This document shows positions 14,439 to 15,718 of a stretch of 64,000 nucleotides of DNA, piece after piece. The stretch is taken from contig NW_027266319.1 in NCBI RefSeq assembly GCF_022045235.1, positions 55,924,001 through 55,988,000 of the forward strand. Direction: 5' to 3'. The stretch's first letter is position 1. Each line of letters opens with the position of its first letter. The stretch is from Haliotis cracherodii. Lineage: Eukaryota. The notes beneath the pieces were generated by a model. That model was given only the letters and a program-made list of their open reading frames with translations. It ran no database searches and was not told the origin of the DNA. The position numbers and the translations under genes were made by a program.

Positions 14439-15718
14439 ATGCGTTTGTTCCTTGTCCTCCTGCTTGTGGCCATAGTCTCCATCCCTCAGTCTGATGCTTG
14501 GGGACGACGGAGACGACGGTTCGTTAGATGGCGCACAGTTGGCACAATAGCACGGATTGGAGCCAGGGTGTTGTTGGGTGAGTGAAGCCAAAGAGTACTT
14601 CATTAAGTGCCTGTCATACAGTATCTTCTATTTTCCCAAACTGTAATGGAGTTACGGTTTAAGTTATAGAACAATGAGCGGCTGTAGTAGGACCAAATCG
14701 GTGATGTATCAAGTACATTAACGTCTCTCTTTTACATCAGGTTCAAATGAAAATAATTAATTAAATGCCTAAAAGGCCAACTCTGCTTTCAGTGTAGAAA
14801 TTGTAACCAACAAGATGCTTTCTATAATCATGCAGTTGTGTAGACCGATGCTCATGATATAAGTCACTGGATTGTCTGTGCCACAACAAGTTATTTAAGG
14901 ACCACTGTCGTTAAGCACTACAGAATGAGACAAGATGTTGTTCGTTATTTGTTTTGATGTAAATTTAAGTCAGTCAGCCAAAGAGCTATATACATGTACG
15001 ATGACGATTTGAAATGGAAACGTGTATATGTTTTGGAATGTTACTGTAGATGTATATAAATATGTTCATTTGATATCAATACTCATAGCCTGATTAAAAG
15101 TGACCACTATCTCATATTCCTTAACTGAAAATGCATTCGTGTTCTTTATTTTGTATCTTTCCAAACATGACTATTTTCATTCAAGGCAAACGAAATGTGG
15201 ATAACCTTGATACAAACATGGACGGCACAATTGACCTGTCCGAAGCTGAGACGCTAATGGACAGACGATCGGCCATGGAGCTCCTTTCGTTCTCAGATGA
15301 AAATGGTAAGAGCTTTTGCCTTCAACTTCATTGATACAAATGAAATGTTTATTACTTTTAAAATAATGTAATTATTTGTCAGATGTTTGTATTTTTTTAC
15401 TCTCATGGGTAATGCGTACCCTTTTCCCGAATAAATCTGACTCCTGAAAATTTATTCTGACTGATTGCAACAACCTTTCTCCATTTAGGAGACTCAAGCG
15501 TGAGTTTGGAAGAGTTCGCAAGGAGCATCAACAACTTGGAGCAGTGAGTCAAATGTAAGGTGGAGCAAATCTTACTGCAATGATCCGTTTTATACAGTAG
15601 AAACCGTCATCCGTTCAACATAACTGTATCTGAAAATGTATGCTTCAGCAATAATTTCATGTCAAATATGCCAAGATCATATGATTTGATGTATTTCTTT
15701 TGTAGATCACTCTATTGA
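14439..15718 (+). CDS. Secreted cationic peptide precursor with two EF-hands, copy 3 (K39R)
   Basis: Coding exons 14439-14577, 15186-15305, 15489-15543, 15706-15718; open frame; signal peptide, GKR and both EF loops intact. Confidence 0.87.

Follow-up and report, generated by a model that had tools for sequence, protein, structure and literature searches.

The segment at 15186-15547 of the 64-kb stretch of DNA analysed here (the window) consists of exons 2 and 3 of a four-exon gene of the abalone Haliotis cracherodii. The precursor encoded by this gene starts with a signal peptide and a 26-residue peptide rich in Arg and Trp, followed by a processing site, Gly-Lys-Arg, and an acidic tail of 56 residues. 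We think it fairly probable that the whole is a secreted prepropeptide, in which a defence-type peptide is accompanied by an EF-hand escort tail and is released by proteolysis.

Gene structure and expression

The gene lies on the forward strand and is spliced as follows. The coding part of exon 1 (14439-14577) takes in the leader and the Arg/Trp-rich peptide and ends one base into the Gly47 codon, at a GTGAGT donor in phase 1; transcript contigs that begin near 14430 support this exon. Intron 1 (14578-15185; 608 nt, phase 1, GT..AG) is represented in run X1 by a loose end before 15185 that reads the end of exon 1, and in run X2 by the joint 14544>15185, which carries a variant of the exon-1 end. 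Exon 2 (15186-15305) encodes the rest of Gly47, Lys48-Arg49, the residues NVDNL, EF-hand loop 1, a helix region and the first part of loop 2; its last base is 15305. The joint that spans intron 2 (15306-15488; 183 nt, phase 1, GT..AG) was found at 15304>15488 (cut +1) in three runs, X1, X2 and X3, but not in the DNA-like run X15. Exon 3 (15489-15554) encodes the remainder of loop 2 (to 15514) and the exiting helix, followed by the stop codon and 7 nt of 3' UTR. The last sense codon runs to 15544 and is followed by the stop codon, TGA, at 15545-15547, so that the end placed at 15543 by the first-pass annotation was slightly short. An intron in the 3' UTR (15555-15705; 151 nt, GT..AG; joint 15554>15706 in both X1 and X2) separates exon 3 from exon 4 (15706-15820), which is 3' UTR with an AATAAA at about 15797. 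The 3' end given for exon 4 is approximate, and the depth in X2 reaches the bin 15758-15811.

Read depth is confined to the exons, being 6e3-1.8e5 there in X1 and X2 versus 0-13 in the introns, and the GT..AG joints are lacking in the DNA-like run X15. The expression runs come from two coded organisms, A and B, and are RNA by guess. The three runs labelled H. cracherodii contain next to none of the sampled words. No tRNA genes were found in the 64-kb window.

A large array of gene copies

The gene belongs to a large array of tandem and inverted copies. The window contains nine copies of each exon, versus none expected from 100 shuffles, and the chromosome carries at least 27 copies of exon 2; the 27 that were read comprise the 9 in the window and 18 other chromosomal loci. 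Copy 1 (4178-5287, forward strand) retains both EF-hand loops; an in-frame TGA interrupts its exon 1 at the Arg30 codon and Asp replaces Gly47, which makes it a likely pseudogene. Copy 2 (10061-12292, reverse) carries Q17H and has an intron 1 of 1.7 kb, and copy 4 (19436-20557, reverse) has Val in place of Gly47 as well as S83L. Copy 5 is at 34331-35552 on the reverse strand. Copy 6 (38051-39271, forward) has one Leu fewer before Gly47 and therefore matches the annotated protein P0001. Copies 7 (50110-51324) and 9 (61483-62697), both on the reverse strand, carry M58K and S83L, while copy 8 (53364-54586, forward) has a synonymous CAG>CAA in the last codon. M58K and S83L are the variants that the first-pass annotation had listed as sparing the calcium ligands, and the ligand positions are indeed kept. 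Separately, an exon-1-like open reading frame (L019, 4754-4620 on the reverse strand) encodes a signal and an Arg-rich peptide; a weak similarity to the tail (E 0.34) was found as well.

Between paralogue clusters 1 and 2, the peptide has a dN of 0.34, whereas that of exon 2 is 0.034. With a dS of 0.227, the omega of exon 2 is 0.15, and the introns are merely 63-69% identical between the two clusters. The EF-hand exon is under purifying selection.

Relatives of the precursor family were found in Haliotis, in Gigantopelta and in two bivalves, and the only named one among them is EFCBP of the pearl oyster. In the open-access literature, we found no paper that describes the abalone family as a peptide precursor, nor anything on a Haliotis arginine-rich antimicrobial multigene family that would cover it; a search of open-access text for EFCBP together with "antimicrobial" returned unrelated papers only. 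Hdh-SMP5 of Haliotis discus hannai, a 134-aa "EF-hand secreted protein", was considered as a named member and was rejected on its description only: its signal has 16 residues, its EF-hands lie at 36-48, 56-68 and 112-124, it is rich in Asp, Ser and Val, and it has no basic peptide.

The peptide and its processing site

A 20-residue signal-like leader (14439-14498) is followed by the 26-residue peptide, WGRRRRRFVRWRTVGTIARIGARVLL (14499-14576). The peptide is free of cysteine and has nine Arg and no Asp or Glu; translation bears out the earlier count of nine basic and no acidic residues, or +11 when the Lys-Arg pair is included. The codon of Gly47 is split by intron 1 (14577 and 15186-15187), and Lys48-Arg49 occupy 15188-15193. 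The processing Arg is invariant in 34 aligned members of the family. Among 24 representative lineages, the site reads GKR in 15, G-R in 6 and RKR in 2, and in 18 of the 24 the distance from the processing Arg to loop 1 is exactly 5 residues. These features suggest that the precursor is secreted, cleaved and amidated: an enzyme of the prohormone-convertase type would cut at Gly-Lys-Arg and, after trimming, the Gly would supply the amide. The peptide may well be antimicrobial. A Pfam match of exon 1 to LEAP-2 (E 0.082) was dismissed as being at chance level.

The EF-hand tail

The tail runs from Asn50 to Gln105 and is encoded across exons 2 and 3. It contains two loops, DTNMDGTIDLSE (loop 1, 15209-15244) and DENGDSSVSLEE (loop 2, 15296-15305 plus 15489-15514), the second with Ser instead of Gly at position 6. 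Both have D, N, D, D or S, and E at positions 1, 3, 5, 9 and 12, respectively, and agree with the EF-hand loop pattern of 12 residues with oxygen ligands at these positions, a hydrophobic residue at position 8 and Glu at position 12. The earlier statement that every copy keeps canonical ligands holds for all the genomic copies read, both loops keeping the ligand positions in 27 out of 27; a single copy, L018, departs from the pattern in loop 1, where position 8, normally hydrophobic, is Thr. Across the family, EF-hand 1 is retained in 58 of the 58 members examined, and about 9 of the 24 representative lineages have a degenerate loop 2.

Four EF-hand models of Pfam match protein P0002 with E-values of 5.6e-5 to 8.9e-4, and none of the four reaches its gathering cut-off (bits/cut-off: EF-hand_1, 22.8/25.4; EF-hand_5, 21.6/25.9; EF-hand_6, 19.5/25; EF-hand_7, 20.0/30). 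Exon 2 alone also gives EF-hand matches, all of them below threshold, and a precomputed match to PF00036 is present in some of the longer paralogues. An AlphaFold model built on 54 sequences is of moderate confidence (mean pLDDT 62, pTM 0.40) and supersedes an earlier run with 13 sequences (pLDDT 59, pTM 0.20), in which the region between the loops formed one continuous helix. The later model has helices at 51-53, 64-70, 73-83 and 93-104 and strands at 61-63 and 90-92. Over residues 51-100 (pLDDT 64-75) these elements form a pair of helix-loop-helix units whose loops are joined by a beta bridge between the two strands. Among the fold matches listed by Foldseek and VIA, almost all are EF-hand proteins; the Foldseek probabilities are 0.93-1.00, with a best E of 0.013, and the VIA Z scores are 7.6-8.9, which are middling by VIA's own scale. 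A profile search of PDB sequences returned weak EF-hand matches only (best E 0.01), and its top match, a designed coiled coil, was taken as chance. Scores from the ESM Atlas (up to 0.80) are leads only and add nothing further on the fold.

Taken together, the canonical loops, the AlphaFold fold, the fold matches and the dN/dS of 0.15 in exon 2 show that the EF-hand tail proposed in the first-pass annotation is a genuine pair under selection. The tail probably binds Ca2+. In the VIA comparison, calmodulin lobes align from model residue 42-45 onward, and therefore the Gly-Lys-Arg site (residues 47-49) lies where EF-hand 1 would have its entering helix.

Charge relation between peptide and tail

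With 14 Asp or Glu and 3 Lys or Arg, the tail has a net charge of -11, just as first counted. Tail charges in the family range from -8 to -22. Among 100 other EF-hand pairs the mean is -2.9 (sd 3.4), and 4 of the 100 reach -11; this control consists of non-family matches to our own profile, mostly from long multi-EF-hand repeat proteins, and is not a neutral sample. The tail is excessively acidic relative to this control, which does not bear out the simple explanation that EF-hand pairs are generally this acidic and that the charge match is trivial.

The idea that the tail matches the peptide in charge survives in part. In ten pairs of sister sequences that differ in peptide charge, the tail charge moved in the same direction in 6, in the opposite direction in 0 and was unchanged in 4, and the lengths of peptide and tail are correlated (r 0.51, p 0.012). 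However, exact balance is found in only 3 of the 24 lineages, the sums of peptide and tail charge range from -12 to +6, and the two charges are not significantly correlated across the 24 lineages (r 0.19, p 0.36). The exact +11/-11 balance applies to the subfamily of this gene and not to the family as a whole. Moreover, three members whose peptide is uncharged (P0147, P0181 and P0182) keep an EF-hand tail that is acidic (-8 to -13), and therefore the tail is not merely a counter-charge.

Possible functions of the tail

According to the reading that we prefer, exons 2 and 3 would encode the pro-region of a secreted prepropeptide, and the peptide would be a defence-type (antimicrobial-like) effector. 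The EF-hand tail may serve as a folded, calcium-loaded escort that offsets the charge of the peptide and, within a secretory pathway rich in calcium, probably aids folding, packing or sorting. The peptide would then be freed by proteolysis at Lys-Arg and not by a change in calcium. Free Ca2+ ranges from tens of micromolar to 10 mM on the way from the ER to seawater. Since it is high throughout, a constitutively loaded domain is likelier than a switch. The cut falls inside the segment that replaces the entering helix of EF-hand 1, and cleavage should therefore also weaken the fold of the tail.

An alternative, which we regard as rather unlikely, is that the protein acts whole and unprocessed, binding calcium outside the cell during shell formation or repair, as has been proposed for EFCBP, while its basic N-terminal half attaches to matrix or mineral. 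Two observations are consistent with this possibility. First, EFCBP has the same plan and matches the family profile at E 1.2e-9. Second, EFCBP is quickly raised after shell damage, according to the available text of PMC3120837 and PMC7810044. However, a wound or defence response would explain the rise after shell damage just as well. The invariant Arg, preceded by Gly in most members, is the signature of processing and amidation, and it has no obvious use in an uncut protein. Furthermore, the family joins a hypervariable peptide to a conserved signal and tail, as defence peptides and toxins do (see PMC5577615).

The first-pass annotation proposed another function: a calcium-gated safety catch, in which the tail binds its own peptide in the manner of calmodulin and shifts in Ca2+ control sequestration and release. 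A broader version sees the EF-hand pair as inhibiting a membrane-active peptide within the same molecule, tuned by calcium or pH. The pair would lose its grip on Lys-Arg cleavage or on a shift in calcium or pH. While loaded in the secretory pathway, the tail would hold the peptide; the cut at Lys-Arg would take away the larger part of the helix that enters EF-hand 1 and thereby loosen the grip, the other possible trigger being a calcium or pH shift in the granule or outside the cell. The gate and the inhibitor both seem improbable to us, to a similar degree, and calcium-gated release of the peptide is only weakly favoured. Several data agree with a gate. Both canonical loops are kept in all 27 copies, the EF-hand exon is under purifying selection, and the tail, more acidic than other EF-hand pairs, tracks the charge of the peptide in sister pairs. 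EF-hand lobes do bind cytolytic cationic peptides, and the structural matches include complexes of Ca2+/calmodulin with melittin (8ahs and 8aht). VIA scores highest against 3k21, 3o4y, 3l19 and 3o77, in all of which a long helix enters an EF-hand lobe or rests on it; their alignments start at model residues 16-31 and end at 102-105.

On the other hand, the premise of an amphipathic helix fails. The best 18-residue hydrophobic moment of the peptide is 0.36, compared with 0.47 +/- 0.15 for shuffles, and 73% of 2000 shuffles of the peptide equal or exceed it; the peptide consists of a block of Arg and, after it, a hydrophobic tail. Structure prediction, one of the checks suggested for the gate, did not favour it either: AlphaFold, run on the protein chain alone, has low confidence both in the peptide and in where it sits (pLDDT 48-58 over residues 21-50). 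The decay of loop 2 in about 9 of the 24 lineages and the rarity of exact charge matching (3 of 24) also argue against a gate. Finally, Ca2+ is high in every compartment en route, and a gate would need an affinity that is unusually low or sensitive to pH. Loop 1 has four paired acidic ligands, a usual mark of high affinity, and this counts against such a gate.

Least likely of all, in our opinion, is that the tail serves chiefly as a calcium-dependent module for sorting or condensation into regulated secretory granules, with charge neutralisation being secondary: the acidic EF-hand tail persists beside the three uncharged peptides, EF-hand 1 is universal among the 58 members, the amidation signal would imply transit through peptide-processing granules, and luminal EF-hand proteins (Cab45) and granins may offer an analogy for such sorting, yet the charge tracking in sister pairs and the length correlation indicate a relation to the peptide itself.

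Implications

H. cracherodii is endangered and has been hit by withering syndrome. If the peptide is a defence effector, abalone hold a very large, highly expressed and unstudied family of antimicrobial type, with relatives that extend to vent snails and bivalves. The conserved tail raises a question left by the mussel literature, namely what role an EF-hand has in the pro-region of a defence peptide, and the abalone family provides for it a test system that is small, free of cysteine and easily synthesised. The family also suggests that the "shell-formation" role of EFCBP may be misassigned. Should the tail prove to be an inhibitor, this would be the first known case of a defence peptide controlled by a metal-sensing pro-domain; EFCBP, and perhaps the tail of mytimycin, would then be parts of wound-induced antimicrobial precursors and not shell proteins.

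Comparison with known systems

The myticalins of Mytilus are close to the abalone precursor in their described features. In the available text of PMC5577615, theirs is a multigene family in which the signal is conserved and the Arg-rich peptide, 23-42 residues long, is hypervariable, and its members have Lys-Arg, amidation from Gly, an anionic extension of 35-75 residues and a phase-1 intron near the boundary between peptide and extension; the abalone precursor agrees with this described plan feature by feature. However, no EF-hand is reported there for the myticalin extension, the term being absent from that paper, whereas the abalone tail has two EF-hands. Likewise, the intron of the myticalins, as described there, lies a few residues past the dibasic site, while that of the abalone gene splits the Gly codon ahead of the site. 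None of the best 150 matches to the family profile was identified as a myticalin.

The precursors of mytimycin, an antifungal peptide of Mytilus, are described in the available parts of PMC8004829 and PMC3210125 as a signal, a cationic peptide, a dibasic site and an anionic EF-hand extension, and their authors state there that the function of the EF-hand domain is unknown. The abalone precursor also has a dibasic site followed by an anionic EF-hand extension, a likeness of described plan. The mature peptides differ, mytimycin having 12 Cys and the linear abalone peptide none.

EFCBP of Pinctada fucata (ABF48089.1, P0035) has a signal, an Arg/Trp-rich block, GKR and two EF-hand loops, and aligns to profile positions 3-122 of the abalone family with 54.7 bits (E 1.2e-9). 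A variant of it, P0169, has GRKR at the site. The stretch between the site and loop 1 is about 17-18 residues long in EFCBP, as opposed to 5 in abalone, and the region between its loops is longer. In print, as given in the available text of papers that cite the original work (PMC3120837 and PMC7810044), EFCBP is a shell-formation protein induced by shell damage.

Lobes of the calmodulin type, with melittin or M13 bound, resemble the abalone tail as two-EF-hand lobes, 55-62 residues of the model being aligned at Z 7.6-8.0. Such lobes bind basic peptides. However, the abalone tail is a single lobe, luminal or extracellular and not cytosolic, and its peptide is not helically amphipathic. Anionic propieces neutralise cationic defence peptides of the defensin type. 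The acidic pro-region of the abalone precursor, which roughly offsets a cationic peptide, is comparable to them, but it is a folded, conserved and predicted metal-binding domain at the C-terminus, instead of a disordered acidic spacer.

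Gene structure and expression

On reading the DNA, the gene is found on the + strand in four exons. Exon 1 (14439-14577, +) carries the ATG and encodes a hydrophobic leader of 20 residues, with SDA at its end, and then a 26-residue peptide that has 9 Arg and 2 Trp but lacks acidic residues; the exon's donor, GTGAGT, is in phase 1. Exon 2 (15186-15305, +) encodes the remainder of the Gly47 codon, Lys48-Arg49, five further residues, EF-hand loop 1, a helix region and the start of loop 2. Exon 3 (15489-15554, +) completes loop 2 and adds the exiting helix, with the stop codon at 15545-15547, and exon 4 begins at 15706 (+) after a 151-nt intron. 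This 3'-UTR intron (15555-15705) is canonical GT..AG, begins 7 nt past the stop codon, and is removed in contigs of the sequencing runs X1 and X2. The first-pass annotation placed the end of the feature a few bases short; its charge counts were right: the peptide has 9 basic residues and no acidic one (+11 with Lys-Arg), and the tail has 14 acidic against 3 basic residues. The ORF fragment spanning exon 2 matches two H. cracherodii "uncharacterized proteins" at NCBI, P0001 (104 aa) and P0002 (105 aa), with identities of 100% and 98%. All full-length-protein analyses were run on these two annotated proteins; P0002 differs from the window gene copy at two residues.

None of the runs is recorded as RNA; X1 and X2, from coded organisms A and B, were taken as RNA by guess. 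Their contigs are confined to exons, with an exon depth of 6,181-40,018 in X1 and 39,243-185,323 in X2, against intron bins of 0 in X1 and at most 12.6 in X2. The DNA-like run X15 has a flat depth of about 50-210. The joint 15304>15488 (GT..AG, 183 nt skipped) is present in X1, X2 and a further run, X3, and the joint 15554>15706 (GT..AG, 151 nt) in X1 and X2; both are absent from X15. The junction of exons 1 and 2 is visible via variant sequences only: in X1 the sequence of a loose end before 15185 matches the end of exon 1 apart from one change, and in X2 a joint carries a variant form of that end. Almost none of the sampled words were found in the three runs labelled as H. cracherodii. The transcript support thus shows expression in samples of close relatives, or at minimum in other samples, rather than in a defined tissue of H. 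cracherodii.

Copies of the gene

Nine copies of each exon are present in the window, against 0 expected, in the orientations + - + - - + - + -. On the chromosome, exon 2 has 27 copies: 20 are at least 98% identical and lie inside about 150 kb, two are 94% identical, and five, about 2 Mb distant, are 93% identical. The array comprises at least 27 genes. As had been claimed, the EF-hand ligands are kept in every copy, in both loops of all 27 chromosomal copies read, and the variants M58K and S83L are present. Gly47 is retained in 25 of the 27. Across the nine copies in the window, variable columns number 10 of 317 in the exons and 153 of 1933 in the introns.

Copy 1 (4178-5287) has a premature in-frame TGA in exon 1 and Asp in place of Gly47. 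Its EF-hand exons are intact, and it is probably a young pseudogene or a null allele in the array. Intron 1 of copy 2 (10416-12153) holds an insertion of ~1.1 kb, because it is 1738 nt long, whereas that of the eight remaining copies measures 608-723 nt. A second cluster (loci L014-L018, G000:C56 53.86-53.90 Mb) has five copies encoding a different, 22-residue Arg-rich peptide, with an EF-hand exon 93% identical. At about 56.022 Mb of the same chromosome, locus L019 contains an exon-1-like ORF (4754-4620, -) with a signal peptide of the P0015/P0054 subfamily (named for two family proteins) and an Arg-rich peptide.

Retroelement ORFs lie between some gene copies, and long ORFs with domain matches are found at 22592-28893, 40351-44827 and 36-1673. 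In one element, an RNase H ORF comes after a reverse transcriptase (RT) ORF of 1062 aa (RVT_1, E 7.7e-35), a second, DIRS-like element combines RT with a tyrosine-recombinase ('Phage_integrase') ORF, and a truncated RT stands at the start of the window. The stretches 14300-14407 and 14840-14893, flanking exon 1, belong to a very abundant interspersed repeat, with contig depths that sum to 5e4-6e5 in each of the four runs and with numerous loose ends. The former contains a GGTTCGAATCC box-like motif, but ARAGORN finds no tRNA gene in the window. Four N runs of 136-225 nt are present (16799-17023, 33413-33583, 55565-55700 and 58808-58948).

Constraint, fold and family

Selection was estimated by dN/dS between the window gene copy and a paralogue from the distant cluster, whose introns are only 63-69% identical. 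The dN is 0.34 in the peptide, 0.18 in the signal and 0.034 in exon 2 (dS 0.227, dN/dS 0.15). Exon 3 has six differences, with a ratio of about 1, every one beyond loop 2. Therefore, the EF-hand region is the most constrained part of the gene and the peptide the least. The same pattern is described for myticalins (PMC5577615).

Both loops are canonical EF-hands on inspection. All four Pfam EF-hand models match P0002 (E 5.6e-5 to 8.9e-4), none of them reaching its gathering score, and the spacing of the loop starts is ordinary (29 residues, versus a median of 28 in control EF-hand pairs). AlphaFold gave a poor model with 13 sequences and the standard EF-hand topology with 54 family sequences, including in each loop a short strand at positions 7-9 (residues 61-63 and 90-92) with helices on either side. 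The pLDDT is 64-75 over residues 51-100 and only 48-58 over the peptide, and the pTM is 0.40. EF-hand proteins are almost all of the Foldseek matches listed (best E 0.013), single-lobe matches covering 55-62 columns at 1.5-2.7 A; the VIA Z of the model is 7.6-8.9, a middling range by the tool's own scale.

A profile from 13 Haliotis proteins, searched against 1.84 billion, found 212 proteins at E <= 1e-3. Full-profile matches have a common plan: signal, Arg/Lys/Trp-rich peptide, processing Arg and EF-hand loops. The 20 full-plan representatives whose origin was looked up come from Haliotis (6), the vent snail Gigantopelta aegis (12), the oyster Saccostrea echinata (1) and Pinctada fucata (1), the last being EFCBP (ABF48089.1), named "EF-hand calcium-binding protein". 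The processing Arg and Asp1 and Glu12 of loop 1 are invariant in 34 aligned members. Of 24 representative lineages, 15 have GKR as the processing site, 6 have Gly-Arg and 2 have RKR. The distance from the site to loop 1 is exactly five residues in 18 of them, and loop 2, as read from the printed loops, is canonical in about 15.

The acidic tail as a counter-charge

The tail had been proposed to be charge-matched to the peptide and to act as a calcium-gated safety catch on it. The initial expectation, that its acidity is merely usual for EF-hands, is not borne out: 100 control pairs cut over the same span from 31 non-family proteins have a mean net charge of -2.9 (sd 3.4), with -11 reached by four of them, while family tails range from -8 to -22. 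This excess favours a counter-charge role. Matching in the strict sense fares less well. Peptide and tail charges correlate with r 0.43 over 58 members, which falls to r 0.19 (p 0.36) on thinning to 24 lineages, where the sum of peptide, site and tail runs from -12 to +6 (median -3.5) and is zero in only 3 of 24. Three members with an uncharged peptide still have tails of -8 to -13. On the other side, peptide charge differs within 10 of 17 sister pairs; in 6 of these the tail charge shifts in the same direction, in 4 it stays unchanged, and in none does it go the opposite way (sign test on 6 of 6, about 0.03 by our own arithmetic, on a tree built on the tail itself). The distant cluster is balanced again (+10/-10, our own count), and peptide length correlates with tail length (r 0.51, p 0.012). 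There is thus some support for an offset of the peptide charge by the acidic tail. The median sum lies near the charge that two bound Ca2+ (+4) would cancel, which may be coincidence.

Gating by calcium is improbable, with several indirect points against it. The peptide is not the calmodulin-type target, an amphipathic basic helix, suggested for it: its block of Arg leads into a hydrophobic tail that contains Gly, and the best 18-residue hydrophobic moment of the peptide (0.36) is equalled or exceeded by 73% of 2000 shuffles. AlphaFold places the peptide with low confidence. Calmodulin lobes align from residue 42-45 of the model; therefore, the Gly-Lys-Arg site sits in the position of the entering helix of EF-hand 1, and a cut there leaves five residues only ahead of loop 1. 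In the uncut precursor, part of the C-terminus of the peptide may be lent to the EF-hand fold, and cleavage would be expected to loosen both. In ER, Golgi and granules, free Ca2+ amounts to tens to hundreds of micromolar, and seawater and haemolymph contain about 10 mM. Four paired acidic ligands are present in loop 1, a set that usually accompanies high affinity. To act as a switch, the site would have to be unusually weak or pH-sensitive; sites of this kind exist in luminal EF-hand proteins.

Comparison with known precursors

In searches of the open-access literature, we found no paper that regards either this family or EFCBP as the precursor of a peptide. Citing papers describe EFCBP as an EF-hand protein that is extracellular and rises immediately on shell damage (PMC3120837, PMC7810044). 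Hdh-SMP5 of Pacific abalone, considered as a family member, is a distinct secreted EF-hand protein, judging from its description. Mytimycin precursors of mussel carry an anionic EF-hand extension behind a dibasic site, the meaning of which is called unknown by the authors (PMC8004829, PMC3210125). Myticalins have every other feature of the abalone plan in common, without a reported EF-hand (PMC5577615). One class of mollusc defence-peptide precursor with an anionic extension is thus already known to have an EF-hand. The abalone precursor is real, selected and unusual in detail, joining a linear cysteine-free cationic peptide to a two-EF-hand tail, and it is best filed with the mollusc defence-peptide precursors bearing anionic extensions.
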